In this document: positions 13,013 to 38,407 of the stretch, piece after piece
How the letters are laid out: the number at the start of each line of letters is the position of its first letter
How positions within the stretch are numbered: position 1 is the first letter of the stretch
Assembly: GCA_964199315.1 (NCBI GenBank)
Contig: OZ116709.1
Coordinates: 1,550,001 to 1,614,000, forward strand
Length of the DNA: 64,000 bases
Direction of reading: 5' to 3'
Source of the DNA: Orbicella franksi
Lineage: Eukaryota
Position numbers and translations under genes: made by a program
Notes under the pieces: generated by a model
Seen by the model: the letters and a program-made list of their open reading frames with translations, nothing else
Databases searched by the model: none
What the model was told of the DNA's origin: nothing

Positions 13013-15408
13013 AAACTGAACTGCAAGTTCATTGTTTTAGGAGTGAAGCGGGAAATTACTGTAGATTGGGAAATACATTTCACGCAACTACCCGAAACAC
13101 TGTTGAGAATTTTAACTGAATTTTAATGCGCGTTAAAGACGTTTATAACGCATGGCCTTTGGCCATGGGCCTTAATCATCGAAGTCTTCGAAATATTTGG
13201 AGATTTGGCATATGCCTTTTCTTAGATTCGATCAGTTGTCACGGTAGACGAAACCCAACTGTGCTTGACCGACTGACTCCTTGATCCACTTTCGCAACAA
13301 TTAATATTGGCTCAACTGACCAACCAAAAATGAAACATAGTTGAAAACGCACAAAGCAAAAGCAAAAGCAAAAGCAATCAATCGATGAATTTACACAGTG
13401 ATTCCTTTATTTCTTGGTTTTGCTTTGTTCCGACAAGAATTCGTGACAGGAATAACCTACTTGTCATCGTTTATTATCCATGTTGCATAATCCCGTTACG
13501 TGCACGTGCACACCAGACAGATTTTAGCCGATAACCAATCAGATCATTCCATTTTCCATCAAAAAACTCCCGGATAACATACGATCTAATAAAATATGTA
13601 GAATCTCCTGCTGCTGTCTTTCACGTGAAAGTACACAAGACGTTGTGTTTGTCGTGGATCCCTACTCGAAGGGATAAACGACATTACATTTACTATCCTC
13701 GACTGTACTTAATACTATCGCTTCAAAATGCGGTTACACGCTGATGATGAAATTTCTTTTGCTGGTTATCGCCACCTGAACGATCTGAGACATGATTCCA
13801 CTTGGATTATGTCGTGCGTTCTTTATGCTCATTCCGCGATCTGTCTCGTCGTAGTGGTCGCCTTCGCAAGCTATGGCCTTGTTTGGCCCGTAAGGAATAA
13901 ATCAGAGACCCTTCTACACAGGACGACAAGGAAAGGTACGGTAACGACCATCCGACATCCAGCACGGTAATGTACAAATGTTCAAGTGAATTTGCATTCT
14001 GTCATCACGACCGCTCGACCGTCGCGGCCAAACCGGTTTCATCGGGTTTGTAACCAGTCGAAGCGGTACGTTTCCAGCCTTCTCCACCTTCAATGGAGTG
14101 AAACGTCATGTTCTTTGATAATCATGGACTATTTAGCTCGATATATTTCCAACATACAGTTGGGATTGCCTCGCTGAATCTTGTTTGACCATTTTGCTTG
14201 CCATTTTGCCTGCGGGAGTTGAAAAATTAGGCGTCGACTAGAAAATTACATGTAAATAAAGACTAGATGAGATAAGTGCAAGTGCGGTTGGCGTTAGGTT
14301 TTAGGACAGGAATAAGGCTTGCACTTAAATCCTTTTATCACAGGAGATCGCGAATCTTTTGGCAAATGTTTCGGGGTAAAGTCTTCGCCTAAAACGTCTG
14401 TGGGGGAAAATGTGAAATAATAATTCGCGTATGTCGCGGTACGGTGGAGGTTGCGGATTGGTGGTTTAAAATTCCTTTCTCGAATGTAGGCAACTCGCGT
14501 AAGTCATATGCCTCGCTAACAAAATCGCTGTATTTTCTTTGAATATTCCAGTAATATCTTCTTACATGTAGAAATAAAAGTGTGAAATAAAGTTGTCCAA
14601 GTCCGTTGTAGGGCCCCATTTAAACCAGCCTATGTTGGCTGCAATGGGTTAACCCTGACAAGAATTCAATAAAAGTCATAAAACAGCCCTTGCGAAAAGT
14701 TTAATGATACCGTGTACCGTCTGGTGTTCTTCACTAGTTAAAGTTATCTGAGTAAAACAGGTTTTCCTAGTAACGCGGCTTGGTAATATCACGCCTCTTT
14801 GTAGGGTACTACCACGCTTACATGGGAGTTTAATTTTGACACGATCTAACAGATTTATTTAGTCGGAAAAGTTTTCACCTAAAAAACAACCAAACTGAAA
14901 GCACCTAGTAAGGAGATTATTGATAAAAAAAATGTCAATTTTCCAAAGGGCCGTAAAATTACTTGGCGTGGCTTGGGTGGACTCTATCACGTGATATACT
15001 GGAGAAGAAGAGCTTTGAACTCGGTGTAAAACAAGTGATACATAAGTGTTCGTGCCATAGCATTTAGACAAAGAAAATCTTCGTTCAGCGATGTAAACAA
15101 GAGCTCTATGATTTTGATTTCCGAGATGCACATTTTACCACGGAAATTTTGGCAATCTGCTAGGAAAATCGAAGTTGACCTTTGACGTAGTTCCACTGAG
15201 CACGTGATCGAGAAGTCGAACAATTTTGACGAACCCTCCCCTCCCTAGAGACAAATCAAAACATCCCAGAATTCAGTACGAGTCCTTGATCCCCCACGAG
15301 GCAGCATGGCGCAATAGCTATTGTCAGCTTTTTCGTTATAATGCCTCCTTTTGTTAGGTTAATTCTTGGTTTGAAGAGGTCAGAGAGAAAACGTGATTTC
15401 ATCTTTTT

Positions 15409-18116
15409 ATGATGTATAACATATTACGTGGATCTGCGAAGTCGTTTTTGTACAATTCGTGCATACGATCTTCAGTGACGGTCGTGAAGTCCACGCGTGC
15501 TGTTACAACACGTTCTAGCTTACCTATTCTGTACAGTAAAGTTTTTATCCTTGAATTCTATCCTTGTCGTAGATACCATACAATGAAAGGTAAGCTCGTC
15601 GACTGAAAAGACGTAAACTTCGTTTTCGTGAAATCATTGAGTTTTGCACAAAATTTTTAGCTCGTATTGATAAACAAAGCCAGGCTGTCAACAAGTTTGT
15701 ACAGGTCATGAGTGCTCGCCACCAACATTTCTTTCGATCCACGTATTGTACTATTTAAGCGGGTGAAAATCTTCTCAATGTTGTGTGTGCCGTAATTCCG
15801 TTTGAGTGAAGGCTGAAATGGGTTTCTTGTCCATTTTTAGGGGCGAAGAGACTAGGAACTGCTGTACGAAGCTATTTTGGAACTCTTCGTTGGTTTAGTA
15901 TTCCAGCGAGTGTTGGTTTCGCCTACGTGTGTTATCAGCAATTCTGGCACATCAAGGAGAGAGAAAAACGAAAACTCGAGGCAGGCGAATCCGTTGAACC
16001 AAGTCAATGGCAGGTGAGATTGCGTGACTAACTGTGTGACTAAGTAGTCACGTCACGAAACTTTTGGATTCTACTTACTAATGATTTGTTGCTTTTTTAG
16101 GTTGCATTGTTCAAGAAGTTACCCACAAGAGCTTGTTCTCGCGCTTGGGGCAAAGTGTGTGATGTTGACTTGCCATTGTGGTTACGTAAACCAATTCTTG
16201 GTTCATTTTCATGGTATTTTGCTTGCAATGTTGCTGAAGCAGTTGAAGAAGAACTTGTAAATTATCCAAGTCTTGGAGCATTTTTTAGAAGGCAACTTAA
16301 ACCTGATGCCAGAAAGATCTGTGATGCCAGCTCTGTTGTAAGTATCTGCTCAGATTATGTAATTGAGTTGTGAGGGATGGGTAAAGTACTAGTGAAGATT
16401 TAACTCACTCAGTTCCCTTCTATGTGCACAGTCTGCAGCGCATAACCTGATAACCCCTAGCACAATGTTACCTCTATGCCATTTATGTTTTTAGGGAAAG
16501 CAGACATTCCATTGTCTTGTGTTGACAGGTTTTCTCAGCTGGTTCTCGTTCTTCTGCAAATATCGATATTCTTATTACTCAGTTCCATACACAACTTTAG
16601 TGCTCTGTTAGGAGAATCTGAGGTAGATCTAAAGACTGTTAGATTTACGTGGTGCATTTCTATGCTCAACATCAAATTGATAATTTGTTTTTCTTAGGTG
16701 AGTCCAGCTGATGGGACTGTGCTCCATTTTGGTGAGGTGGAAAATGACATGGTTGAACAAGTCAAAGGAATAACTTATTCAATGAAAACCTTCCTTGGAC
16801 CAGATCAACCATCCAGTTCTACACTAAAGGAATTAGCATCAAATAACAATAAAAGCCTATATCACTGTGTAATTTACCTGGGACCTGGTGACTATCATTC
16901 ATTTCATTCACCTAGTGAATGGAATGTCAAACTCAGGAGACATTTTCCAGGTTAGTCAAACATTTTATTTTCTGTTGTTCTTAATTGATTTTGTAATAAA
17001 AAATAATGATAAAACATCGCGTTTCGACCTCTCCAAGGTCATTTTCAAGTGTGAGAGGTTGAAACATTGTGACTTCATATTGTCACTTTCATTATAAAAT
17101 GAATTTCTATGAAATTACTCATTACTAATTTATTAGTAAATTTCTGTGTAAAAACATGGAAAAGTGTGCTGTAGCAATTTTTCAAGTTTTGCCATAATTC
17201 CTTCACTGCAAAGTTTGTATTACACATCTATTCAGTATCCTGACTCTTGACCTTGTTTTTGTAATTTGCTGAAGTTGAATTTCCCCAATGGAAACTCGTG
17301 TAAACAACCACCTTCATTTATTCCTACACATGCTAAAATCTCTTGTAATCAACCAAATGCCATCAGCACCTTTGTTCTCTTGGCTATTTTCTACCTTGGT
17401 AAACTATCATTCAAAAGTATCCTTAAATGTCTAGGCAATTGAAGACTCAGCTCCACGTGCTTTGTCATTGCAGGGGATTTGTTTTCTGTGCACCCAGGAA
17501 TAGCTCAAATGGTTGCTGGTTTGTTCAACCATAATGAACGTGTTGTTCTCAGTGGTTCCTGGAAACATGGATTTTTCAGTTTCACGGCTGTCGGAGCTTA
17601 CAATGTTGGATCTATTAACCTCAAGTTTGACAAGGTACCTTTGATTATCAGCTTTGTGATCTTGGCTAAAAATTGGTAGTACAAGCCTTTTTCTCAGTCA
17701 TGCAAATGCATACCACCAATGTCTCCCTGTAGCACTGTTTGGATAGTATGAAAACACTTCCTCCTCTCCCACCTTCTTGACAGCCTAAATCCCCATAGAC
17801 AAAGCTTAAATTGGGCATAAGTAAGAGTTATAACTGCAAACTTTTACTTATAGCTTTGTTTCATTTACTTTTGCAGGATTTGAAAACAAACTGTGCAGGA
17901 AGGTATTCTCCAGGCTCATTTCATGAATTAGAATACCTTAACGATAAACCTGAAGGAGTTCCTCTTGTTCGTGGTGAGAGAATGGGAGCATTTAACCTTG
18001 GATCAACTATTGTCTTGATATTTGAGGCGCCTAAAGACTTTGAATTTCATGTTCAAGCTGGACAGAAACTAAAATATGGTGAACCAGTAGGATTATCTAG
18101 AGAAGAAGCAGAATAA
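15409..18116 (+). CDS. PISD: Phosphatidylserine decarboxylase proenzyme, mitochondrial
   Basis: Exons 15409-15589, 15841-16013, 16101-16337, 16698-16950, 17474-17634 and 17877-18116 give 414 aa, all GT-AG and in phase. Motifs include [35 protein letters not shown] and the autocleavage motif [14 protein letters not shown]. The N-terminus is transit-peptide-like, followed by a hydrophobic anchor. Confidence 0.97.
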
Positions 18117-19581
18117 CATAATTTTTAAATGTAAATTAGAGTTTATAGGTACAGTGTTCAATATATAAATTAGAGGTTATCTTTAAGGGTATTGATGCAG
18201 TCTTACGATATTACAATTTAAAGAAAATTTTCTACGGAAGTATTTTGTGGTGAAAATACTTCCTCTTCAAAGGTATAAGGATATACATGTACTACCAAAA
18301 CCACATTGACGTTGTTGATATTGTAACAGCTCAGATTAGTTAAGAACTGTTGTGGATTGAAATTATATAAAAAAAATATATATGGTGTTTTTGCCATAGT
18401 TAATAGAGGGTAATGGTTATGAAACTCAACAAAGTTCTTTATTGTATGTTTTTGTTCTCTTTTTTGCCTTGAATGTGCACAAAGACAATAGTTGTTTACT
18501 CTGTACTGAGGAACTAACCAATAGAAACGTGTTGGTTACGTAATTCGTGCATAGTGTATGAGCGCAAAACAAAAGATTGTGCATGCTCGTGGACCTTCCA
18601 ACATAAATCTTGGCCTCTTTGTTTGCTCCTTTGACTTTTGCCGGGCTTCATAACCAGTCCCCTCTATTAACTATGGTTTTTGCCTTTTACAAAAAGCAAC
18701 TCTTGTATTCATAGTTCTCTTTCTTTAAAACTCTTTCTAGCCCTTACAGTGCAAAACTAATGCACCCGAGAAAATTCAGCTTTTTGCAAAAATTGAGCAA
18801 TAAGATTAATTAGTTAGTTAATTAATTAATTATCAGTTATTGATTAAAATAATAATGGTCACATTTGTTATGGTTACTTCATGTTGGGAATCTATTGGTA
18901 ATATCAAAGGATTTCATTTGTCAATTTACCCAAAATTTGGGCTGGTGGACTTAGTTACAGCGTTAGCACTGTATACGAAAATCAAAAGCTAAAATTAATG
19001 TGGAAAAACAGTCAATGTTCACGTGGTTGAACAATTTGAGTAAAATGTCATCAGCAGTTTCTGCTTGTGTCTGGTTAATTAATTTTGAAATATTAGTGAT
19101 GTCATCATTATTGGCCTCATTTCTTTTGAATGGCTCAAGTGGGGCAAATCAATATTTTCACATAATCATTATTTCTAAATTAAAGTAAAACTCATAAATT
19201 GATACTGTACAAATTGTTGACATTTTCAAATGAAATGTAAGATTTGTTTAAAATCTGTACAAAGGTTATATTGAGAAAATATTTATTATACATAAACTGA
19301 CTATTAATTACTGAGGGAAACCATTTTTAGGTATCAGTCTATCAATGAACCATAACCTACATTAGGTTCTCTAGACATTTAATTTTTACACAAAGTTCAA
19401 AAGCAAATTAAAAAATATAAAAAAATATTTTTGTTAAACCAGGGTTGATTTGACCTTTCACCCTGAAATGTTACTTTCCATGAAAACAAAGTAGATCTGC
19501 TTTTTTGTGTGATTTACAGGTTTGACTCCAGTAGAAGGTTCTTTACACTCATCACTTAAGCTTGTGTTGGGTTTTATGTTA

Positions 19582-20737: not shown

Positions 20738-21294
20738 ACACTATGTGAGATAACTGGAGAATGTTTGACATTTAATCACATGCACACGAATCAGGGGCTT
20801 CATTGACATTTTCAGCAAGAGGACAACTGATTTTCACAGGTGGGCAAGACCAGTTGAACTGAAATTCTAAGAAAGAAAAACTTTCCTCTAGATGGTCAAA
20901 CCAGTCAGGCAAAATCTTCCTCACAACCAGTCAATTTGCCCAGTGCCAGGCCCTTCATAAAACCCCTGACATGAATGAAGACTGTGCATGCAGAGACATG
21001 GTCATGGTCACCTGCACCACAGGTTTGGCTTGACATGCAACAAGAAAAGAATATTGCACAACGAAAACCCACCAAAGAGGGAGACTAGGAAACTGAGATA
21101 AAATGGTAGAAGTCGGATTGTTGTCAAAAAATGCAAATATTTATTCAAACACTGGGCTAGCTGTCAATGGTGAAAGATAACAGGTTGATTTTAGTTGTTT
21201 CACAGCATTCATTTTATATTATGACACTCATCTGTTAGTTTTGCAGTTGACTGCACCAGATTAGAGAGAATACTAAATTGATTATGCAGCTTAT

Positions 21295-24200
21295 CTAAGA
21301 TGATGTCTTCTTAGCATCATTGTGATATTTGAGGACATCTTTATACTGTGATGGTGTCTGGTTAGCTTGAGCTTGATGCCATTCTGACCATATGTCAGAC
21401 GATAATTCTGCTAGGCGCTTTTTACGTTTTATTTCTTTGTACTTCATCTCAATCTGATCAGCGATCAATGCTGTGAGAAAGAACACAAGAGGACTAAAGT
21501 TAGCTTTTCCGAAATGAGACAAAGCAAAAAATATCTATGAACCAGTTTCTAGTTGGTTTCAGTAAGCCAAAGTCTTCTATGAGATAATATTCAGTGTGGC
21601 ACAGCAGAGTTGACCGGCAAGGAAAAGTAGTCTAATTACTGTTTTAATTGCCACAATTATAGAAAGCAATTCTAAACTTGCGTTACAATTTATACTAAGA
21701 TGCAATTTTTGGTCAAAATCCATTTTAGCCCAGCATATGTGTCACTGTGTTCTATTAAGCAATTAGATTACGAGCTCGAGATTTCTATTGCGTGATTGTT
21801 GACGAGGATGCACTATCATGCATGGAAATCGAGAGCGAATAATCTAATTGTTTTAGTATAAATCTACAAGTTGTTCAAAACTTTATCTAAATCCTCTTCA
21901 CAGACACTTTGAAAATGCCAAGAAGCAGCTGTCATTTTGTTAACAAGGGTACACTGCTACTCACTATCTATCACAGAATAGATAGTGAGTAGTGTAGCCA
22001 ATCAGAGAACGGCATTTGTGATAGAATGCTAGTAGATTTATACTTACAGATGACACACATAGTAAATGATGAGGGAACCTATCACATTTGCGATTTTTAT
22101 AGTCCATACTCGCTACAGTCTACTCTGTCCTTTCCTATAACAGAAATCATTACACTTCACATGTACAAGTCAGATTGAAAAAATATAACTAGATTGTGAC
22201 AAAAGCCACCAATACAAAACAGAAGACAACCTACTTTCTTTGCAGTGACTGACTGTCAAGGACACACGACCTGAAATCAAGAGAAACAATTAATCAATCA
22301 TTTATTTATTCACCTGACCAGACATGACAAAATAATAAGATCAAATAAGAAGAGAAAATTCTCAGAGTAAGAAATAGCAAGGAGGCCTTTAAGGGTTAAT
22401 CAGTGGACAGATCCATCTTTTCTAATTGTAGTCTACTTACATTGTTAAATATATTCTGTCAAGTGTACACCAAATTATAAACCTGTACTGTGCAGTGCAG
22501 GCTCAGTATTTCTTTGCTAAATGCTTGACAGCTGTCTTGTATTTTTGAAGGAGAGTAAGGTTGGTGAGAGAATGAAATTTCTATGGTGGTTTGGTAAACA
22601 ATCGCCAGCTCATAACACTAGCTTGCACTCCCTTATAAGACGCCTGCACTGCAGGTTACCTAAGTGATTTGATAATCACATCTGGATAAAACAACTACCC
22701 CTCTAAATCATAACAGTTGAGAATGTTTGGTTTATATAACCTAAGCTTGACTCTATGCTACTCTTCCTGCTGTTGAGTAAGGTGACAGAAGGCTTAATCC
22801 AGCTCTAATAAGCTATTCTAACAAGAAATTCAAATTAACTACCCTTACCTGAGACAGATTTCAAAAGATTTACAGCCCTCTCATGATCAAGCCCCTCCAA
22901 ACTCTAAAAAACATTTTAAAAATGGTGTGAATCTAAAAGCATATTAAGTAGTTCATATTGTGTGATCGTCTGGGTCAGTGTGATTATTTTTATCATAATC
23001 TGCACTTGATTATGAAAGGGCGAGTGGTGAGAATGTGGTTATACAATAACAGCTATTTCAAACTCACAGCAGAAAGCAACCTAAAACCAACAGCCAAATA
23101 TGGCATATGGCATAAAAAAAATTTTAACATGCTGCTTAAAAAGTGGAAAATGTAGGCCTTACTCTGTCATTTACAGCAAGAATCTTGTCACCAACAGATA
23201 ATCCCCCATGTCTGCAAGAGGAACAACAAACAAATTCCACTTCAATACTCAGTCTGGTAACAATAACAAATCCTTCCAAGATAATATAGTTGAAAGGTCT
23301 GGAGGTCAGCTTATCCCTTACTGCATGACTTGTGATCACAATATTAACATTATAACTATGGTAGTGTACTGGCCACTAGCAAAGTCAATCCTTGGAAAAC
23401 CTGCTTGTTGGGGCTCATCTGGTACGGTAACCACTCCCTACCTGTCTGCAACACCCCCAGGCACTATGTGTGAAATAAACACAGGGGTTGTATAGTGAAA
23501 CACAAGCCACTTCTCATTCTGTTTTGTCTTCTTTTCACCTCCTCTTATGTGAAAACCAAAGCTCTCCTCTCCCTAAGGATAACACAAAATGTGATATCAG
23601 GTGCTTTTCACTCTAGTCTACAAACTTATGCGAAAAGGTTCTTGGAGCTTCCATTCACACTTAAGAGGGCATGGGATTTATAAGCTGTTGTACAAACCTA
23701 CTACTTCAGATGAATATTGCCACTCTTACACAGCCTACTATACATGACAAGGTGATACTTTCTTATAAATTAAATTTAAAGATTATCATTCTCAGATGAC
23801 ACATCTAAATATTGTGGCTAAACATAAAACAATAGTTTCAAATTCATAAGCTAGCTATTATTACACTTTTGCTATAATCACAATTATATCTTCAAAGATT
23901 TTTGAAGTAATGAAATTTGGTGTTGCTGTATAATTTATTATCTGTGCTGTTAAATGTCAAATATGACTAGTCATGCCACTCCACTCAAGACCTACCATGG
24001 GCATAGTTCTTCCCAAACAAATAATTCTTGTGTGCTGGTAACTCAACACATGAGAAAGAATGCTGACTGGAGTGTATGCATCAGTTGTCCCTCTAATAAT
24101 GTATGATGCAACAGCCTGTCCCAAACTTGACATAGTTTGGTGTATAAAATTTCATGTGCTGCACCAAACTGATTCAAATTATGCTCTTCTGCTGTACATA

Positions 24201-27200
24201 ATTCATTAGTTAGGTCTAGCGCAAGAGTGGAGCAGTATCTGGACATGCCTGATAGGCATTACACAAATCACTGTACCTTGTCCAGTTCCACAACTCGCTG
24301 TTCAGCAACAGTCAAACCAAAATCGATGTTTGCCTCTGTTACAAAATCATCCCGGTCAAGTACTAACTGAAACTTGTTGAATTCATCTGGGTAATGCTTT
24401 GTAAGAGCTTCTTGGCATGCCTGTAATGTGAATTTAATGCCTTGTACAACATCTAATGTAAGGTACACACTCCATTCAATAGGCCATCTTTGTTTTCTTG
24501 GTATTAGAACCAGCTTGCAATTATGGCAGTTTATGGGAATATAATAAATTTAACAGCTTCATTTCATTTGCATTTGAAAAGATTAGCTTGTATTCCCTTT
24601 CATTTCAATCTAATCCAGTTCGGTCAGAGAATACAAAAATGGCCCACTGCAAAATGCTTTCCATAAATAAATCATTATACAAAATGCCAACATTTGTGGC
24701 AGCTGATACATTGCACATGTCATTTTTCTATTTCCTTTATTAAGCTTACATAGCTTATTATAAAATTGCAGGTTAACATACCTTTTTCTCTGCCAAGGAT
24801 AGCGAGTGGCGAGTGGCTGATACATTGTACATGTCATTTTTCTATTTCCTTTATTAAGCTTACATAGCTTATTATAAAATTGCAGGTCAACATACCTTTT
24901 TCTCTGCCAAGGATAGCGAGTGGCAGACCCCTAAAACAGGCAATAAAATGTTAAACCATTAGGACAGTCTAACAAGTGAGGTTTTTAACCCCAAATTACT
25001 TGATACACCTTTTTTGGTTGAATCAGAATGTACATGAATCATGTGATGTGTCTTCAAACATTACAACTGCATAACTCCCTACGATAAAAAGAGCTTCAAC
25101 AATGAGCATGCATATGATAAGATCATGGCATCTTCAGGCCATGTTCAGTCATGAATATGTCTCATTGACCAGAGTGATACTGAAAGAAATTTAGAAACCT
25201 GCTCCAAATACATGTACTGTGGTCATTTAAACATAAATGGGACAACAAGCAACTTGTGAAGCCTTTTTTAATGTAATCATTTATTGCTTTCCATAACAAA
25301 TATAACAAATACAAAATATTACTGTTAAAAATAGTGAAGTATTTGTGCAATAGAAAGGAACTACTTATTTTCCTGTCAGAAGTATCTAATGATTTCTTGT
25401 TGCCTCCATGAAGTCTTGTAACACCCTAGTTTAAACCTTTATAGCCATGTTTCATGGCTGATGGTGGTAACATAGAGAGATGTAAGTCAGTGGAATCATA
25501 CCTTGACTTAGTACTTCACTTTTTTCACCTCGTATAACACTGACAGAATAGATGAATGGATTGTTCAGATGAAGATGAGATTTGCTCTTCTCTTTGGAAT
25601 CAAGTCTAGAAACAACACAAAATAAACCTATTTTTATTTCAATCAAAAGTTGGAAATTTATCAAAAACTTAATGTTAGTTACTTTACAAAACCTTTTTCA
25701 ATGTTCTGTAATCTTATTGGTCAGTTTTGTTTTAGAGACCTTGTTAACTGAAGTCACACTGTGACAACAGTAGACAAAATTTACAACAAATAACTGACAA
25801 TATTATTCACTGCAAGTTTTCTTAGATTACTAATATAATGAAACAAACAAACAGACAAACAAATATCAGTCTTTTTCGACAGCATTCAGGATTCACAAAA
25901 ACTAAAAAAGCACAGCCAAACAAATGATGCTTACTTTGTCTTCAAGGGAAAGTGTCCTACCATATCTGATATACACTGAAGAATGAACTTTGGGTGTTGC
26001 AGTTTTATGAGCTCCTCAATCTTATCATTTGTCAGTTCCGGTACAAGATGCGACCTTACAAATGCATCTGCTTTTTCAGGACTCTAACAAAAAAGAAGAA
26101 AAATTCACAATGAGAGAACTGGTTACTTCACTTTCATGGAGTCACAACAGTTCAAAAGATCAACATTCCTTGAGCATGGTTGTCTCACTTTAGAAAATTA
26201 AAATACCAGCCAAAAACATTTCTGAAATATGCCATCAGTTAACATGACCCTGATGACATATGTACTGCTTTACTGACCTCATGAGTATACACTGCTCCAA
26301 CTAGAGCTAATACAGTTTGCCTCTGCATCAGTTCATGTGGTTGTCTCTAAAACAAAAACAGTATAGAATTGTACAATTTCTGTCTCTGTTTCATTTGCAG
26401 AGTGCAACTCCAGCTACCAAAAAGCAAAAAATTGACATTTATATGTGATAAACTCACAGAAAAAAGAGTCTTTCCTTTGATATTCCACTCCACTGCTTTC
26501 TGCAATACATAATCATCTAACAAAGCATTCTGTATATCCCTGCAACAAATGATCTGAATTAATTATACTACAACTTTCTTGAGTATAATGCAATAATAAT
26601 ATTATTAATTCTTATTAATATAAACTGAGTTATGTCATGTTTCACTCATTCTGCCCATGACGGAAGGACCTATGTTAAGCTGTCTTGTTTGAAAGCAAGG
26701 TGACCACATGTGTGAAAACAGGTCTTGTGATAAGCTTATTATTCACCACGTAGTAAGTAAATTCACATGACTCTCTACTAGTCTTACCAGATCTGTAATG
26801 CTGAAAGTTCAGGAAAGTTGTGATAAAGATACTCTGTGATACACTTTCTTGTGGTCTGTGCACCTAAAGAGACATATTTCAGTCAGAGCTCAAAACAAAT
26901 AAGTTACAACAAATGAACTTAACACAGCTTATAGAAGCCAATTGAAAAAAAGTGCTGAGAAAACCTTGAAAGTATTGAGTAAAAAACCCATCTCATGCTT
27001 AGCTGTTACCAAGAAAGCTTTGCTAACAAATTGATAATATTAAGGTACAAAGATAAAGCTAAGTACGTTCTCTTGCCAGTAACATTAGCAGTCTTTTAGG
27101 GTAAAATTAATATAAATCACAGTAAACTGTATATTTATAACTTACAAACTTACAGTTTCCTACAAGGGGAAGAAATATCTATGTATAATTAGAATTATTT

Positions 27201-29371
27201 GTCAACTTTAAGTCTTACCAAGAAAAGCCAGTTTTTCGTTACATTCATGAGGTTCCATAAGTTTGTCAGCATTTGCTATCAGGTATGACTCGTGAGTGAA
27301 AGCAGCCAAAAGGTCTTTTACATCTGGGATGTTTACATTGAGTTTTGTGGAAAATGAAACAATATTTTCCCTGAAATCTGTTAAAAGAGAAAAATGCTGA
27401 AATCAGGCAAGTATTTAAGTTAACATTTAATACTTTGATCACAAATCTACAAACCCCTTGGTTCATGCATGTACATCTTTACAACAGTGGTGCACTTGCC
27501 AAAAAAACTTTTGATACTACTTCGTTCACAGGCTCACAACACAAAATATAGAACTGTAAAGGTAACAATCTGTGTATGAAGCTTTGGTCAACACTGATAT
27601 TCTAGTACTCCATACTTATTGTCATATAACATGTACTTCTTGCTGTGTTTGGTTCTCAGAATCTGTTACTATATGCTTAAGTGGGTGGTCAATTGTTCCA
27701 CACTGTGCAAAGATTGCTTTTAACATAATAAATACCTGTGTTGCTTAAAAGAGTTTGAGGAGTTTCTACATCCTAGAAAATAAAATTAAAAAGCTTTGTT
27801 TAGCTTTGCTTTGTTTGTAGTAATTAGTGTCTTTAGCAGGCTTTATTATATCTCTCAGTTAGTATGCGCGTTATGATTGGTCAATTTAGTGGACTGTCCT
27901 CTACTGCACGGCCCGCTAAAATTTAAAGCTGTGTTTGTTGCCAAAATGTTTCGTGATTTATCGCGAAGTGCTCTTAACTTTTTAGCAATTACAAGTTTAA
28001 AACTTTCTCTTACTTCTGAAACTGTGTATTAAAACCTGCTAATAACTTGAGAGTCACTTAACAACGGTTTCAAACTGACTTGTATTGCTTTTGAGGTGTG
28101 ACAAAAAATTTGAACCATTCCACGTGAATAGAAATCATTCTTGAACCTGTCAGACACACAGAAGAGATATAATATATATGTTACTAACCTTATTTTCTTG
28201 GTCGGTACTGTAAAGTACGGATCCTTGTTTTTTCCCCCTTCAATTTATGGCCCAAGCGCCTGGGCCATAAATTGATGGGAAAAAACTTGGTCTGAAACTT
28301 ACAGTATGGCCCTTGAACTCGGTTAGTAAGAGGTATGTATTGAAATATATATAATACACCATTATCCTGGCATGATGTCTACCATTAGAGGGTGGTAAAT
28401 ATACCTGATTTATAACTTCTTAGACCAAATCTAATGTTTAATTAATCAAACTTAACTGAACTTAATCAATCTTAACCAAACTTAATCAAACGATTTGGCT
28501 CAATTGACAGAAAGTTTGGCACTCAAAAACAATCAGACCCTTGCAGTAAAATCGAAGTAGTCAAATGCAATTGAACTTCGATTGAGTTTGACTAATTTGA
28601 ATGGTCAAAGTTGGAATATAACATCTGATTTTAAATGGGAGTTATATGAGACAAATGTGGATATTTTCCTGAATGTTCTTGTTTTTCTACAGTGTCTTAT
28701 GAAGAAAGTTGCACTGTTGAACTAGCTTTGTTTAACTTCACTGCATTGCATGGTAAGAGAGATTTTTCAATGTCCAATGAAGTTCAACTGGGTTCAACTA
28801 AGTAAAGAAATTAAACACAATCAAACTCACACACAAATGTTTTGGTTTGATTTTGTTTCATCGCTGAACTCAATCAAAAACAATCATTCCACAAAGTTTG
28901 ATTGCATTCAAGCTGTAAAAAAACACATATATTTTGGTCTGAAATAGGGCAAGGGCTTTCCCAAATTCTGAGAAGTTAATGCACCCTCCTCTGCCAGCCC
29001 CGCCCCCGGGACAATTCCCTTGAAGGTTCTAGGTGAGATCACCCATCAGGAGCATTGACTGAAAAAAAAAAAAAAAAGAAAACTTAAACATTTTTTCTCG
29101 TATTAGGACCACCAAGGTAACGAGCTGTCTTCTATATATAGAAGCTATCATGACTTGTACATACCGGATACTTTTCGGTGCAAAACCAGGACTTTTGTGT
29201 CTTTTTCACGTCAGACCTGTATCTCTGTAACAAGTCACAACTTACACACCAGGACGATGCTGATGCGGGGCGTACAAGCGATTTACTAAATAAGTCATTT
29301 GCAAGTGCCCTTAGAAAAAATGTCCTTGCCAGTGGAAATAAAGTTCTTGAAGAAAATATTACAGAGCTCAT
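21295..29371 (-). CDS. MRPL44: MRPL44-like (RNase III-like + dsRBD) protein fused to a C-terminal LIN7-like PDZ domain, 496 aa
   Basis: Fourteen exons, all GT-AG and phase-compatible: 29371-29165, 27396-27219, 26863-26788, 26539-26458, 26346-26278, 26083-25935, 25605-25502, 24930-24896, 24420-24277, 23572-23442, 23211-23163, 22903-22849, 22270-22235, 21470-21295; 1491 nt with no internal stop. The order is a transit-like N-terminus, the RNase III-like region (LLAAFTHESY, NEKLAFLG, TVLALVGAVY, AFVRSHLVPEL, QHPKFIL), the dsRBD (IYSVSV...SQGVCHSLSLAEKKACQEAL) and then the PDZ. The exon 2 acceptor (27396) was chosen because it restores phase. Confidence 0.85.
22235..24297 (-). other. PDZ domain (LIN7-like) encoded by the end of exon 9 and exons 10-13 of the MRPL44-like gene
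   Basis: The spliced sequence RVVELDKGEESFGFHIRGG...TPVFISHIVPGGVADRHGGLSVGDKILAVNDRSLEGLDHERAVNLLKSVSGRVSLTV aligns almost residue for residue with LIN7 as I recall it (RVVELPKTEEGLGFNIMGG...[57 protein letters not shown]). Confidence 0.92.
24702..24924. repeat. 114-bp tandem duplication that copies most of microexon 8 and its donor site
   Basis: GCTGATACATTG...CCTTTTTCTCTGCCAAGGATAGCGAGTGGC occurs at 24702-24810 and 24816-24924, differing at about 2 positions. Confidence 0.92.
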
Positions 29372-29538: not shown

Positions 29539-32500
29539 ATGTTGACTGCCATGTTGAAAAAAGTAGCTACAAGTGATGAGTACCCAGTCCTCGCTCCACT
29601 TATTGGTGCCTGCGTTGTCCCGCAGGTCGTGCAGGAGTGCAGGCGTGCAGGACATTGTGCAGGACAAAGTGCAGTAAAAGATGGGGTAGCTGCTATGGAG
29701 CAAACGGCCCACAGAAAAGAAGATGTGCTCCTTTTTGTGCCCAACCTAATAGGTCAGATATTTCTTCTTTCTTCTAGTTTTGCCTTTTTAACTTTTTACC
29801 TTTCTAAATTTTTAAATTTTTAAATCTTACAGGACCCCTTTGATAATAGTACTTTATAGTACTGATGGGTTAATCCTGTCTAAAGATTCGTTATTATTAT
29901 TTATTTTTATTCTCGTCTCCATTGATTTTAGCCCTATGTGATCACGATCTGTTTTGTAAAAGGTGCGTTAGGTGTAAACTGAAAGAAAGACAATGGCAAT
30001 TATGTAACACTTCGTGTAACCAAAAAATTACAAGCTGCCAAAATGATCTCCTTCTATCAGAGGTATTGATATCAATATAACCAGAAGCAGGCACGGTTCC
30101 TTCCTTCTTTAGATTTTTAGGCGGAGGGAAAATATGTTTCTCAGTACACCCAGGTACACCCTGTCCCACAAGCTTGAGATAAAAGTGAAAATCTTCGTGA
30201 TACTCATTGAATTCTACTTGTTTTGTATAAAAACTAATGTCTATCTTTTGTCTCTAAAGGTTACGTACGTCTTGTCCTTTTACTAGCATCCTGGATATTC
30301 TTTACCAATCCAGTCCTTTTCCTGTCTTTTTACACCTCATCAATCTTACTGGATGGTGAGAGCTGTGTACATTGTGATTCTTAAATAAGCTTACATATTT
30401 GCTTGACACGAATTCATGATATTTTCTAAGCTGCATGTTTGCCAGATCAGCTCAGTTTGTGTTATCACAGGAGCCCAAATCAAAGCATCAAGTCTGGTGA
30501 CGACCCCATACTTGATGAACCTCAGGGTGATGGGTTGGGGGGGGGGGGGGAACTCCCTGTAACAAATGGAATATATTGGAAGGCTCTCCCTGAAAGGGTT
30601 ACCTTTTTCAGGCTGGATGTATATAGAATGGTAGGATTTTAACTAGTTGAAGTATAGAAAAGAGTAGAAAACCTGTCTCTCAAGTAGTAACGGACTTCAG
30701 CAAAATGTTTGATACAGGTGTGTTGGTGATAAGGAGTTACAAAGGCCATTTATGGGTTTGAATTAAACAATTTAGAGATTTCTTTTAGGGTGAAATTTTC
30801 TGGTGGACTTTTTTTGGGTAGAGAGGTTTCTAAAGGATTTTTTTTAGAATAAATAAGAGTATACTGTAGTATGTGGAAGGGGTTACATTTTCTGTGCAAG
30901 ATCTTTCATATAGATTCACTATTATTATTTTATTTCAGGTCTTGATGGAATTTTAGCACGGCAGTTAAACCAAACATCTGCATTTGGAGCCTGGGTACTG
31001 AAATTTCTTTGATTCAATTTCATCTTCAACTAAATAATGTCAATGTCGTGGTTTTCTCTCATAACTTCTTGAGAGCTAAAAAGCTCTCAAAATTAAATTG
31101 CAAAAATTGATGTTGTTCCCTTTGAAGCAGAACCAGGTTAAGTCAGTAGATTGAATTGATGGGTCAGGTCTATATTGGTACAAATGAACTTGAACCCAGT
31201 TTTTCAAACTGTCATGACTAAGCTGAGCTTGTAGCAACAGATAAACAAGAGCTTTCCCTTCTGTTGTGCTAAATGTCTCTCAATTTTGCCTTGACCTAAG
31301 TATGTCCTGAAAATCGACATGTACTGGGTGCAGCGGGGTTATTTATTCATTTTTTGTACAGTTTGTTCTTTTTATAGTTAGATGTTGTTATTGACAATCT
31401 TGGCAGAGGAATGCTGTGGACCTTACTTTATAAAGTAATTGTTACTTTGTTGTTGATGATATTTTCAATGTTAATGATATTAATGTAATGTTAGCCCCCA
31501 GGGGAGGGGAAGCATATTTAGAGGGAGACTTTGCCTAAAGGGGGTAGCTTTTTCAGGCTGAAGGTGTATAAAAGAGTACGGAAGGCTGTCATATTTAAAA
31601 GGGCCATTCCAAATAACTCAACAGATGCACCAAATGTTTCAACAATCGATATCTTTTAAGGGGTTAGTGGAGTGAAAAGTTTAGAGAAGGGATGGAGCAT
31701 TTCTGTTGTTACTGTGTGAAAGGGCTACCATTTTATAATAGAAAGTCTATAAATGGTTCCTGTTCCGATCAAAAATGATGTAATTATATGATTAGTGAGG
31801 GTTGAACCTCAGCTGGAGTCCCCCTGTATAAAACTGTGTTGAGTAATCCCTCAGGGATGTTAGCCATTAGTGAGCTTGCTTTGTATCAAGTGGCAATGTT
31901 CACCCTAACCAACTGAAAAGGCATTGTATTCAAGAGGTTAGAGTATGTAAATATTGGAAAAAAATTAATGTTTACCAACTTCTGCCCATGTTTTGATTTT
32001 GCTTTTCTAGTGGTAGTGTCAGACCTCTTTGAAAGGCAGGGGCTCCAAACTTTTTCTGGCCCTTTGGGCCTTAAATTAACACCATCACCCCCCATCCAAA
32101 TATTTTGGCCCTTTGGGTCTTGAGTATTTTTGCATATAACAAGGGCCCCAGGCCCCTTCCTTGGATCTACCACTGTTGTTTGACCAGTTGCTAGTATACA
32201 GCCATTGATTCAACTGTTGGCATGAATGAATTCTCTTTTTTTTAAATAAAAGAAGTCTAATACATGTGTAAGTTTCTATAATTTCTTAATGACTCACTCG
32301 TTTAGATGTTATCTGAGTGTGTAGCAGCAAATATCCAATATTAAAAATCTTCTCACTTGTTCTTGACAGTGGGCATACTTTATTAGTGCATTCGAGTGGT
32401 TGGTATTTGTGTGCACACATACACTAGGAGCACAGTGGAAGAGTACCAAAACAAATCCTCCTTCATGGGTTCAAACTGTCATGGCTAATGGTATGTTGTT

Positions 32501-35489
32501 TCCAGACATGTTCATGAATATGTTATAGTTGAACTTCTCCAAAAAGCCACTTTTGTTGTGGGAAGGTTACCTTTAAATATCTTAAAGATAAAGTAGTCAT
32601 GCCTATAACTTTTATATATGGGAGTTTTCCCCTGCCCCCCCCCCCCCCTACCACCCCCAATCCTGTTTGTTTAGCTTTGACATAATAATCTTGATTGATC
32701 ATCATATTTCAAATTAGTTTCTTTAATTCACTTGTCAGGATTTAAAACACCAGCAGGAGTGTTTGCTGTGAGTGGCCTGCATGTGCTACCTGTGTGGCTA
32801 TATGGACTCAAGTCACACCTGTGGACACCGTTCATGTCACACCATTTACAATTGGGAGTGACTGGTGTTTTAGTTTCTGGCAGAGCTCTTTGTATGGCTG
32901 TTGAAGTAAGTTTGATGATAAGTTGCAGGAATCACAATGAGAAGACCTCTTAACTGGTTTGTTCTTCTGTGGCTTGAAGTTGAGCTGAAACTCTCATAAG
33001 GTCATTAAGAGGATAGGTTTACTCACTCTCTTTCCTCTTACCAATTTCCCTAAGCAAATCAAGTGAACTGCACCATACTAACTTTGGTCAAATGAGGAAG
33101 GAGTACGTGTATTCTAAGCTAATTATATAACAACTAGTTGTACCTATTGGTAAATGCCAACAAACAAATGAACCATTGTCAATGAGGATAATGGTTGTTT
33201 AGCAAGTATTTTACGTATACATCAATGTAACCTATGACTCTGGGAGAAGTACTTTATTTATTTGTAAACCCAAGTGAGCCTCTCTGAACAAACGGAATGA
33301 ACTGATAACTTCACGTAGACACGCAAACAAATTTCTCCTGAAAAATGCTAAATCTTAAATTTTATAAATTTTATAAATTTTATAGCTTCACTTGTCACAA
33401 AATTTTATAGCTTATCTTGTCACGCAATAGTAACGGAGTTTATTTATTTTTAATCTCCTACTTTCCATTGTTTTGTAAAAACGTTCACTTATTGTAGCTA
33501 TCATATTTCCAACAGTTATGTGCGTACTTCAAATCAGTGTTACGATGTAATTTCGCATTTGACAATTTTATCTGATGAGTGCTGCCCACAAGTTGTGTAG
33601 TACCAAACTAGATACAGTCAAACCTCCCATAAGCGACCACCCAAAATGTCAAGCCTAGGTGGTCGTTTATATGAGGTGGTCGCTTACGAGAGCTTAGACC
33701 ATACTGGGTCAAAATTTTGCCTCATTAGCATATGGTAACTGCAGAGACTTACCCTGTGTTTTAAATGCTTTATTCATTGGAAAAGTTAATTTCGAGAAAA
33801 AATCTGATTCTTCCCGTCTAGACATTTCCATCCCCTGTACTATCCAGGAACGCGACAATGTTAGAACACCTTATTATCCAGTTTCCACTCTATTATCTGT
33901 TAAGTGCTCGTCTACGGGAGGTTAAAAACAAAAGAAAATTTCAAACTTTTAGCTCTATAAGTGGTCGTGGTCGCTTATGAGAGCTGGTCATCTACAAGAG
34001 GTTCCAAATATAGTAATTTGACTTGAAAACTTTTGGTATTTTGGAAAACTGGTCGTACCCTGGTCCCAGAGGTTTTTCTTGATTTTTCTTATTTTCGGGA
34101 AGCGGCTAACACAAGTCGCGAATAAAATTCTTGCCGCTTTGCGACTTGTGTTTTCACTGCTTTGCGGCTCTCTTGCAGCTCTCTCATGCAGAGAAAAATA
34201 AAGAAAAACCTCTCGGACCAGGGTAAACTGGTCACTGAGTAGAGGTGGTCGCAACTGGAGGTTTGACTGTAGTAATAAAATGCCAAGTCAAATCTACGTT
34301 TGATCAGTTCGTCATCTGTTATATATATGTGTAGATGTACTGAATTGTTGCCAAGGAAAGGACAGACATGAAATGGTTTTGGTAGAATTTAATTTATATT
34401 TGTTTGAAATGTTTAAAATTTGAGCAATTCTAAATAATGTTTTGGTTTTGTCATGGACAAATTTTTTCAGCTTTGGCATACTATATATTAAAGTTTGGTC
34501 TCCTCACATGGGCATGGTTGTTCAAAAAACCAGATACTTGGCAGTCAAGAATTTTAAACCACGAGCTAGTACTTGACTATTATGAATGTTTTATTGTTTA
34601 AATTCATATCTATTATGAACACACTTTTTTTAAAAAAACTGGCCGTCGAATATTGAAGAAGCTACTTTTTAACAGTAGCTTAGCCAACAGTTCTAAGAAC
34701 TTCAATTCTCTGCAGTCACTCAGTACCTATTGACAATGTCACGCAACCTGGGGTGAACTTTCGTTGTGTTATGTGCTTCCATGCCAAGGTGGTGAATCCT
34801 ATGGTATTTATACACAGAGGTCAAGCAGTCTCAGCAGGTTTGAATGGAAATTATGGTGGAAAAACGAAAATAATTTCTGACTGCTGGGTAAACAGTCAAT
34901 TGAGAAATGCCCATGAGTCACACAAAGCTTGGACAATTTGTGACTTGGAAACCCAAAAATTGGCTCGTCCCAAATGTCAACAACATCGGCCTACATCCTG
35001 ATATGACCAAAAAATCTCACAGCACCGGAAATGTTCACTTACGCAAAATCGAGCTGAGAAAATCTGAGAACTTTTCTGGGTAACCTGCTGCATAAACCTC
35101 CAGACTATGTATGTTGCTTTATAGCTGCCTCCTCGTCAGACTCGTGTTTTCGCCTGTCTGACTTGTTGGCAATAATGTATCCTGTTTGTTTCTTATGGTT
35201 ACTGTATAGACTAATTTATACAAGATTTGTTTACAATACTCATGCTTAAATTAAGTTCATTGTAAGAAAGAACTCTGCAACATCCGTTCCAATGAAGAGT
35301 AAATAATAACTATAGATATGTGTTCAAATATTAGAATATTGATCAGTACTTGTTATGACACTCCTGCTCATAAAAATACTTTTTTGATAGGTTTGGTTTA
35401 TTACAAGCCACATAAAAGATCTGCTAGCAGATCATGAACAGAAAGTACCATCACCAAGTGCAGATCCCTTGATTGAAGATGCTACCTAG
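29539..35489 (+). CDS. CDP-alcohol phosphatidyltransferase family protein (PI-synthase/CDIPT-like paralog)
   Basis: Exons 29539 (or 29695)-29752, 30260-30355, 30939-30994, 31378-31434, 32370-32490, 32739-32905 and 35391-35489 (TAG) are all in phase. The protein has VLLFVPNLIGYVR and the full family motif D-G-x2-A-R-x8-G-x3-D-x3-D (DGILARQLNQTSAFGAWLDVVID). The downstream sequence (DNLGRGMLW, EWLVFVC, GLHVLPVWLY) differs from canonical CDIPT (DRCSTM, SHWLH). Confidence 0.88.
33615..34269. mobile_element. Tc1/mariner-type MITE (TA TSD) with a nested element
   Basis: TA|CAGTCAAACCTCC ... GGAGGTTTGACTG|TA, with repeated GGTGGTCG/CGACCACC subterminal motifs. It lies in the last intron of the phosphotransferase gene. 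Confidence 0.85.
34056..34225. mobile_element. 170-bp MITE nested in the mariner-type MITE, 9-bp TSD
   Basis: TIRs TACCCTGGTCCCAGAGGTTTTTCTT and AAGAAAAACCTCTCGGACCAGGGTA. Flanks are AACTGGTCG and AACTGGTCA (8/9 match). Confidence 0.8.
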
Positions 35490-36395
35490 AGATACATGCT
35501 AAAGTTCTACTACACCAAAATGGCATGATGAAATCTTGGTTTGGCTGGATGGCTGAAATTGAGCATACCTGATGCACTGAAACATGCCTCATGTTTTACA
35601 CTTTCATACCTGTTACTATTATAAAGGAGATGTGATAAACAGTTTATGCCATCATTTTTGTAACATGCACCTAGAAGTTGCAAAGGAAGGCAGCTGCAGC
35701 CTTAACTAAATGTGAAATGAATGTTAATATACTTGACCTACAAGCAAAAAATGCTATATGGTGCAAAAGAATTAAAGGCCAAAACGAAAAGCCTATTACT
35801 GGTAAGTGCTGTACTGTGGTGACAACCTCCTGGGATAAGGCCAGAAAGAAGCATAAATAGGCCATTTTGGTATTTTTGGTAAACTTTAGACTGGAAGTAG
35901 CTTGCAACTGAGGCTAATGTGGGAAGTTTTTTTGTTTTATACCGAGAATGAAAAATGGCCTATTGTACCATTAATAAGCCATTGTGGAGAAAAATGTAGA
36001 AGTCAATGGTTTAAGAGAAAGTATTTTAATTTTATTTAGATATTTTACTGACTTTAATGGTTATCACAACTATTAAAAACTTGAAAAGGATGTTAATTAG
36101 TCCATAACACTTGGAATTTTGAAATTTAGTAGTAGCTCTCAAATGTTGCCTGCCCTGGGCAAGTGTTAGTTTACTCTTCTTTTTATTGAGTCAACAGGCG
36201 ACATGCCTGAACCCTTACCCATTGGGCAAGTGAGAATGAAAAGTCACTTGCCTTGCAAAAAAAATTACTTGTCCCATATGACTGGATGGCACTTGCTTTA
36301 CTGGGACAGAATTAATGGGTTATTGTAGAAAGATGACCTATCTAGGGAGCTGGCCATTAGTAGAGGCTCATCCTGGGAGGCTCAGCTCCTGGTAG

Positions 36396-37507: not shown

Positions 37508-38407
37508 ATGACGCTTATATCACATATTAGACATGTTGGACACGGAAGAATCATGGCTGGGTTGATGAATTTTGCTCTGAAAATCCTCGTCGACTTTTTT
37601 GATAAATTCGGTCTCGTTTACAAAAGAAATGTTGGAACCTTCTTAAGCTACAAGCTTGGTAAAGGCCACACAGTAACCCTTCCTCCGTCAACACCACATT
37701 TGACGATAAGTCCTACTTTTCTTGAAGGCAAGAGAGTTCTTTTCGTGGGAGATGTTCATGGTTGTTTCGACGAGCTCAAAGAGTTGTACGATAAATGTGC
37801 ATATCCTGGCACGGATATTGTTGTAGTCTACGTGGGTGACCTTGTGTACAAAGGTCCGAAGACTTTGGATGTAATTCGCTTTGTGAGAGAGACCGGCTCG
37901 TTCTCTGTCAGAGGGAATCATGAACAGTCGATTTTAACAGAAATCCTTCATAAAAGAAGAAACGAACCCGTTAGAGATAAACGGAGAATTGTTTACGACC
38001 TAACCCTGGAGGATGAAGAATTCTTGGAAAATCTTCCCTTCACGATAAGCATTCCTTCGTTGAATGTGCTGGTAGTTCATGGTGGTTTGCTGCCAGGGGT
38101 ACCCCTGACGGAGCAAGACCCCTTGGGTATGATCTTCATCAGAAACTATAACCCAGAGAAATTTCAAGGAACGGCGAGCACAGGCGATGGTTTTGCTTGG
38201 GCGTCCGTATGGAATGGTCCCCAACATGTTGTATTTGGACATGATGCTCGGCGGGGGCTTCAGTTGCATGCACATGCAACTGGTATTGACACTGGATGTG
38301 TATATGGTAATCATTTGACTGGTATTCTGGTGGAGGATGGGGTATGGAACAACAGAAAATTAATCCAAGTCAAAGCAAAAGAAAAGTACACCCCAAAAGA
38401 AAGCTGA
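37508..38407 (+). CDS. ApaH/PrpE-like metallophosphoesterase (bis(5'-nucleosyl)-tetraphosphatase family), single exon; probable start 37553
   Basis: Intact 299-codon ORF with calcineurin-like motifs in order: GDVHGC, GDLVYKGP, VRGNHE, VHGGL, VVFGHDA, GIDTGCVYG...LTG. Confidence 0.93.
   Translation: MTLISHIRHVGHGRIMAGLMNFALKILVDFFDKFGLVYKRNVGTFLSYKLGKGHTVTLPPSTPHLTISPTFLEGKRVLFVGDVHGCFDELKELYDKCAYPGTDIVVVYVGDLVYKGPKTLDVIRFVRETGSFSVRGNHEQSILTEILHKRRNEPVRDKRRIVYDLTLEDEEFLENLPFTISIPSLNVLVVHGGLLPGVPLTEQDPLGMIFIRNYNPEKFQGTASTGDGFAWASVWNGPQHVVFGHDARRGLQLHAHATGIDTGCVYGNHLTGILVEDGVWNNRKLIQVKAKEKYTPKES

Follow-up and report, generated by a model that had tools for sequence, protein, structure and literature searches.

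The minus strand of a 64,000-nucleotide (nt) stretch of the Orbicella franksi genome (assembly GCA_964199315.1, contig OZ116709.1, positions 1,550,001 to 1,614,000; called the window below, with all positions given in its own coordinates) holds a gene that raises a simple question: has a protein of the mitochondrial ribosome (mitoribosome) acquired a domain of a cell-polarity scaffold, or were two neighbouring genes taken for one? An earlier note on this DNA, made from the letters alone, had described the gene as mL44 (MRPL44), a large-subunit protein with an RNase III-like domain and a double-stranded RNA-binding domain (dsRBD), continued in frame by a LIN7-type PDZ domain. On balance we favour the reading that in stony corals the mL44 gene has been fused to the PDZ domain and helix of LIN7, and that the product would be imported into mitochondria, take its place in the mitoribosome and use the PDZ domain to dock the C-terminus of a partner protein.

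Transcription across the two modules

Rebuilding the exons via GT/AG boundaries on the minus strand gave 15 exons and 1509 nt, forming an in-phase open reading frame (ORF) of 502 residues between 29371 and 21295 (Table 1). Start, stop and the in-phase splicing into a single ORF are as the earlier note had them, whereas its 14 exons and 496 residues proved too few; the exon that it lacks is most likely the micro-exon of 35 nt at 24930-24896, or else exon 2 with its 37 nt. Over its full length the model can be aligned without gaps, at 94% identity, to a 502-residue protein (P0023) from an intronless transcript contig of 1629 nt (L007); the 90% cluster of P0023 contains Orbicella faveolata XP_020607822. 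Together with other orthologues, P0023 stood in for the window protein as query in the database searches.

The RNA evidence consists of two polyA RNA-seq runs and two sets of metatranscriptome contigs, aligned to 21050-27049 and therewith to exons 4 to 15 (E4-E15). In polyA run X23 the junction 24277/23572 (E10/E11), which the earlier note had singled out as the place to check the fusion with RNA-seq, is spanned by 23 reads with 20 distinct starts, and the ten other junctions within E4-E15 have 14-34 reads each, likewise with numerous different start points. Specifically, the introns of E4-E7 have 14-25 junction reads apiece, followed by 25 (25935/25605), 34 (25502/24930) and 20 (24896/24420), then 23, 25, 26 and 31 for the junctions joining E11-E14 from 24277/23572 on, and 34 for 22235/21470 (E14/E15). 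Usage of the E10/E11 junction is therefore on par with that of its neighbours (20 and 25). Depth in intron 10 is 0.1-2 in the polyA RNA-seq, against 8-16 in the exons on either side, and over 21050-27049 neither an alternative first exon nor a step in depth is seen before the PDZ exons. For exons 1 to 3, support comes from the gapless match to the transcript-derived P0023 (E1 included) and from the conserved exon structure; in addition, where the RNA contigs come loose at 26864 they continue into the end of E3, and an in-frame stop lies upstream of the ATG at 29371.

Since all junctions from E4 to E15 are supported and intron 10 is nearly empty, read-through or merging by annotation is excluded as the main explanation. 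Missing transcripts between its exons 9 and 10 (E10 and E11 here), with PDZ exons expressed from their own promoter, had been named in the earlier note as the outcome that would speak against a fusion; we see junction reads and a near-empty intron instead. Its claim that this is one gene and not two merged ones is further borne out by full-length intronless transcript contigs with the whole fused ORF in other corals, and by the 15-exon structure shared with Pocillopora and Porites (see below).

Two shorter products were considered and rejected. Many cluster members have 438-450 instead of 510-522 residues, as an isoform lacking the presequence would; the L003 contig, however, holds the full upstream ORF, identical to that of L001, and the short forms are due to the choice of an internal Met by the gene caller. 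A PDZ-less mL44 could be produced by retention of the intron after E10, where read-through in the window meets a stop after two codons. This stop is not conserved in Pocillopora, Porites and two further contigs (L011 and L013), and the depth of the intron in polyA RNA is near zero, so that such a product finds no support.

Most RNA reads are just 95-99% similar to the window. At 24930, the first base of E9, all junction reads and RNA contigs differ from it, so that residue 295 becomes Val instead of Gly, as in the Orbicella-like P0023. Either the site is polymorphic, or the RNA samples come from another species than the assembly.

The mL44-like and LIN7-derived parts

From its N-terminus the protein comprises a basic presequence-like segment, the RNase III-like domain, a putative dsRBD, a linker of ~20 residues, the PDZ domain, a long helix and a tail. 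The mL44-like nature of the first part, as proposed in the earlier note, is supported by domain, sequence and fold comparisons alike. Pfam matches in a 511-residue Porites-type orthologue (P0006) include Ribonucleas_3_3 (5e-12), Ribonuclease_3 and RM44_endonuclase (29.8 bits, cut-off 27). With a profile of 11 orthologous N-terminal parts, the mouse and human mL44 chains are the first PDB matches (~5e-8), followed by bacterial RNase III and Drosha; with the RNase III-like domain of P0023 alone mL44 again comes first (6e-6 vs 3e-4), and mL44-specific stretches are aligned. Foldseek ranks mitoribosomal mL44 chains first in the PDB and human mL44 first in Swiss-Prot (8e-13), where residues 28-330 are aligned to residues 1-332 of 332. 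Mammalian mL44, the best match for residues 28-330, is built of a presequence, a dead RNase III-like domain and then a dsRBD, an order that the coral protein would share, and the motifs RQT..A..GA....PE.A..F.R..LI are common to both. Human mL44 stops at residue 332, just past the dsRBD region (an end like that given for mL44 proteins in the earlier note), whereas the coral protein adds ~170 residues with the PDZ domain and the long helix.

The full-length AlphaFold2 (AF2) model is confident for residues 75-320 only, and shows a helical RNase III domain followed by the dsRBD. Helices are found at 128-252 and strands at 257-297; the alpha-beta-beta-beta-alpha order at 241-315 has a predicted local distance difference test score (pLDDT) of just 60-75. 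An RNase III domain with a dsRBD is also the fold of bacterial and eukaryotic class 1 RNase III (Rnc, Rnt1). The canonical signature motif of RNase III is ERLEFLGD, for which the window protein has NEKLAFLGAQ, with Ala positions that are invariant among the orthologues. We take the two stretches to be equivalent, in which case the catalytic acidic residues have been replaced by Ala; because of this replacement the domain, unlike that of the class 1 enzymes, is not predicted to act as a nuclease. The N-terminal 40 residues of each of the nine orthologues examined are Ser/Thr-rich with 5-8 basic and 1-2 acidic residues, a composition that fits a putative mitochondrial presequence.

The C-terminal part points to LIN7. 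Pfam PDZ is matched at 2.7e-18 (on the orthologue), and the best single-domain PDB sequence match is the PDZ domain of LIN7B (2dkr; 2.8e-18), with 69 bits about twice the score of the DLG4 PDZ domains (<=33 bits each). As the PDZ half remains below a pLDDT of 50 in the full-length AF2 model (12-sequence alignment), this domain was refolded by itself: residues 340-502 then show the strand and helix order of a PDZ domain and a long helix at 443-480 (mean pLDDT 68). In Swiss-Prot the best 14 Foldseek matches of this model are all LIN7A, LIN7B or LIN7C (Veli/MALS; polarity scaffolds with L27 and PDZ domains) at ~3e-11 and 35-43% identity, a thousand-fold margin over other PDZ families, with PTPN13 next at 6e-8. 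The alignments start at LIN7 residues 86-105, just past L27, and end within 1-2 residues of the LIN7 C-terminus; the post-PDZ helix is therefore also LIN7-derived. For L27 itself no Pfam match is obtained in P0006, which agrees with the earlier note's view of a LIN7 copy without L27. Since L27 is lacking and mL44 stands in its place N-terminal to the PDZ domain, the protein carries a LIN7-derived module and is not a member of the LIN7 family.

Two more features set it apart from LIN7: a conserved insertion of ~12 residues in the beta2-beta3 loop, as seen in the LIN7B alignment, and a coral-specific tail motif (SDIWSEWHQAQAN..PSQYKDVL). Shared with LIN7 are the class I features, a GLGF-type carboxylate-binding loop (here SFGF) and a His at alpha-B1 (GLDHERAV), which like the insertion are encoded by E11-E14. 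Both the S-F-G-F loop and the His of GLDHER, which the earlier note had already placed at the start of helix B, are invariant in 10-12 orthologues. The peptide-binding groove is predicted to be intact and of class I (S/T-x-hydrophobic).

The alignment with human mL44 ends at approximately residue 330, and that with LIN7 begins at approximately residue 342-346. Both ends are within E10 (residues 307-354), which places the join in the interior of an exon; as the earlier note had observed for its exon 9 (our E10), a single exon encodes the end of the last dsRBD helix (ACQEAL) as well as the first PDZ strand (AEQRVVELDK). This position suggests that a deletion brought the final coding exon of mL44 together with an exon of LIN7, rather than that exons were shuffled at an intron.

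Spread, constraint and possible function

Two protein searches yielded 13 clusters of fused proteins (456-563 residues, both Pfam signatures). Complexa are represented by Acropora palmata, A. millepora, A. muricata, Montipora capricornis, M. foliosa, Porites lutea, P. lobata and P. harrisoni, and Robusta by Pocillopora verrucosa, Stylophora pistillata, Orbicella faveolata, Oculina patagonica and Desmophyllum pertusum; the fusion is fixed in both major scleractinian clades. Mapping the exact proteins to the genomes of Pocillopora verrucosa and Porites lutea gave 15 exons with equal phases in both, and the lengths of E3-E14 are identical apart from two 3-nt indels in Porites. Compared with the window, E3 is the same in length and phase in both genera, E10 measures 144 nt in Pocillopora and 147 nt in Porites, and the equivalents of E2 measure 43 nt and 31 nt, respectively, with phases unchanged. 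The neighbouring CDP-alcohol phosphatidyltransferase gene is also kept in Pocillopora and Porites. Given the same gene structure, phases and neighbours in both clades, the fusion predates the Complexa/Robusta split.

It may be older than the stony corals, since a contig of much greater divergence retains the junction exon: the cnidarian-like ctg140589 of ENA ERZ25072724 (L012-L014) contains exons 3-10 with much longer introns and 38% identity in exon 3, and its junction exon reads AEQRVVEIRK followed by a splice donor, so that the LIN7-type first strand is retained. Within 16 kb downstream of this exon no PDZ exon was detected, and a LINE (long interspersed nuclear element) is inserted there. 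Another ENA contig (L011) holds a complete fused gene with ~50% identity in exon 3. Word-indexed searches gave no fused proteins outside corals; as they missed sea-anemone mL44 too, this absence carries little weight.

The added part is also the most constrained one. Relative to the Orbicella-like transcript L007 (dS 0.18), dN/dS amounts to 0.05 for the PDZ domain and tail (3 nonsynonymous and 16 synonymous changes) against 0.16 for the mL44 domains, and the five changes in E15 are all synonymous. When Robusta and Complexa are compared, identity is highest in the PDZ domain (73%) and tail (69%), followed by the RNase III-like domain (62%), dsRBD (60%), linker (48%) and presequence (27%). The protein is under strong purifying selection, which acts most strongly on the PDZ domain and tail. 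With a fusion that is expressed, fixed in both clades and most constrained in its added part, it follows that the PDZ domain has some function.

As to origin and function, we propose that an ancient deletion or fusion event placed the PDZ-encoding part of a LIN7 copy in frame behind the last coding exon of mL44; this copy would have kept its PDZ domain and C-terminal helix and lost L27. The protein would enter mitochondria via its N-terminal presequence and assemble into the large mitoribosomal subunit as mammalian mL44 does. The latter assembles early as part of the body module and is required to recruit mL43 (PMC11638073); it is also one of the mitochondria-specific proteins of a second layer by which the ring around the exit tunnel is extended (PMC7700125). 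PDZ domain and helix would then be displayed at the solvent side, where the PDZ domain could hold the free class I C-terminus of a partner; this might be a protein next to it in the mitoribosome, or a matrix or inner-membrane factor that is recruited to it. It might further be speculated, with considerable doubt, that a PDZ domain beside the polypeptide exit offers a co-translational docking site for the C-terminal tail of an inner-membrane insertase or assembly factor, or for the released C-termini of mitochondrially encoded subunits. If true, such docking would couple mitochondrial translation to membrane insertion, a coupling that to our knowledge is not known in any other animal.

A number of observations weigh against this proposal. 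With ~20% identity and E values of 1e-6 to 1e-8, the resemblance to mammalian mL44 is weak; bacterial RNase III nearly equals mL44 by Foldseek score, and Pfam DSRM_MRPL44 and dsrm are unmatched at E<0.1 in P0006. The presequence is called from composition only. Beyond residue 320 the full-length AF2 model is poor and does not fix the position of the PDZ domain relative to the ribosome. Finally, corals might possess a second, PDZ-less mL44 gene, the profile search being word-indexed and insensitive.

Among the alternatives, the one that survives best, unlikely as we consider it, regards PDZ domain and helix as a purely structural extension, comparable to many lineage-specific extensions of mitoribosomal proteins: a permanent clamp on the C-terminus or a surface of a neighbouring mitoribosomal protein, or a replacement of lost ribosomal RNA contacts, instead of a means to recruit exchangeable partners. 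Mitoribosomes are known to have grown through the capture and repurposing of unrelated protein domains, mL44 itself being a dead RNase III, and the strong conservation of PDZ domain and tail suits a fixed contact equally well; the intact class I groove is compatible with either clamp or adaptor.

Less credible, and in our opinion improbable, is a neofunctionalised paralogue outside the ribosome (a cytosolic, membrane-bound or dual-localised RNA-binding scaffold), with the canonical mL44 encoded elsewhere. The low similarity to mammalian mL44 would fit, as would the use of the name lin-7 by some annotators and the normal site of action of LIN7 PDZ domains, the cell cortex. Nonetheless, a presequence-like N-terminus is kept in all orthologues (the shorter forms being gene-caller artefacts), sequence and fold comparisons both rank mL44 as the first family, and the search with the mL44-part profile gave fused coral proteins only and no second RNase III-like or mL44-like paralogue, within the limited sensitivity of that search.

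That adjacent mL44 and PDZ genes, the latter on its own promoter, were joined by read-through or annotation is hardly conceivable, as nothing was found in favour of it while E10 alone encodes both mL44 and LIN7-derived sequence, the E10/E11 junction is used like its neighbours with no extra start exon or depth step in intron 10, the ORF is kept across the deep Complexa/Robusta split with a PDZ-part dN/dS of 0.05, and both the RNA-seq and the Pocillopora and Porites gene structures refute it.

In our favoured reading, that of an mL44 fused to a LIN7 module and built into the mitoribosome, the gene represents a conserved and previously uncharacterised mL44 variant, and a clear instance, open to testing, of a mitochondrial ribosomal protein that has captured a domain. 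Scaffold-type PDZ domains are modules of polarity complexes at the cell cortex. Full-text literature searches returned no papers that link mL44, MRPL44 or mitoribosomes with a PDZ domain; a metazoan scaffold-type PDZ domain on the mitoribosome has thus not been reported in the literature searched, and the architecture, of which the earlier note was aware of no description, was not encountered there either. The fusion provides a handle for finding a partner of the coral mitoribosome, and mitochondrial function is central to coral symbiosis and stress biology. A practical consequence concerns annotation: the database names of the fused proteins vary between "uncharacterized protein", "Protein lin-7 C", "Protein lin-7-like B" and "39S ribosomal protein L44", for which reason coral orthology tables for LIN7 and MRPL44 are probably contaminated.

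Exon structure and surroundings of the gene

All exons are listed in Table 1 along with the adjacent genes.

Table 1. Exons of the mL44-PDZ gene and neighbouring genes in the window.
Feature	Position	Strand	Content
E1	29371-29165	-	residues 1-69; ATG at 29371; basic, Ser/Thr-rich, nearly acid-free N-terminus, presequence-like
E2	27772-27736	-	37 nt, residues 70-81
E3	27377-27219	-	159 nt; start of RNase III-like domain with degenerate signature NEKLAFLG
E4	26863-26788	-	RNase III-like helical domain (E4-E7: its remainder and start of dsRBD)
E5	26539-26458	-	within E4-E7, as above
E6	26346-26278	-	within E4-E7, as above
E7	26083-25935	-	last exon of E4-E7, as above
E8	25605-25502	-	dsRBD beta strands (with E9)
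E9	24930-24896	-	35-nt micro-exon; dsRBD beta strands (with E8)
E10, junction exon	24420-24277	-	144 nt, residues 307-354; last dsRBD helix, ~20-residue linker, PDZ strand beta-A (AEQRVVELDK); phase-0 intron after ELDK
E11	23572-23442	-	PDZ core (E11-E14)
E12	23211-23163	-	PDZ core (E11-E14)
E13	22903-22849	-	PDZ core (E11-E14)
E14	22270-22235	-	PDZ core (E11-E14)
E15	21470-21295	-	residues 445-502 and stop; long post-PDZ helix, highly conserved tail (RKKRLAELSSDIWSEWHQAQAN..PSQYKDVLKYH)
3' untranslated region	21294-21118	-	AATAAA at 21145-21140; RNA contig ends at 21118
Phosphatidylserine-decarboxylase-like gene	13728-18125	+	converges on 3' end of mL44-PDZ gene; kept in Pocillopora
CDP-alcohol phosphatidyltransferase gene	29695-35501	+	head to head with mL44-PDZ gene, ~300 base pairs (bp) between starts
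Metallophosphoesterase ORF	37535-38407	+	single exon, beyond CDP-alcohol phosphatidyltransferase gene; kept in Pocillopora

Of these three neighbouring genes, two code for enzymes of phospholipid synthesis. Because of the short distance between the head-to-head starts, the mL44-PDZ and CDP-alcohol phosphatidyltransferase genes probably share a bidirectional promoter.

A 114-bp tandem duplication (24702-24924; 2.0 copies, 98% identical) has placed a second copy of most of E9, splice donor included, in the intron that follows. If used, the duplicated copy would insert 114 nt in frame; in the RNA-seq data only the upstream donor at 24896 is used.

Within the last intron, RNA depth in the metatranscriptome contigs runs into the thousands at 21650-22049, and many reads continue into unrelated sequence. 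A small nucleolar RNA or other RNA gene was considered for this region and rejected: no Rfam match is found, inverted repeats resembling a MITE (miniature inverted-repeat transposable element) are present at 21757-21853 and 21855-22044, and the loose read ends indicate a dispersed family of transcribed repeats. At some distance from the gene, ORFs at 41161-43340 (plus strand) with endonuclease/reverse-transcriptase (Exo_endo_phos_2) and weak RVT_1 matches look like the remnant of a LINE-type retrotransposon.

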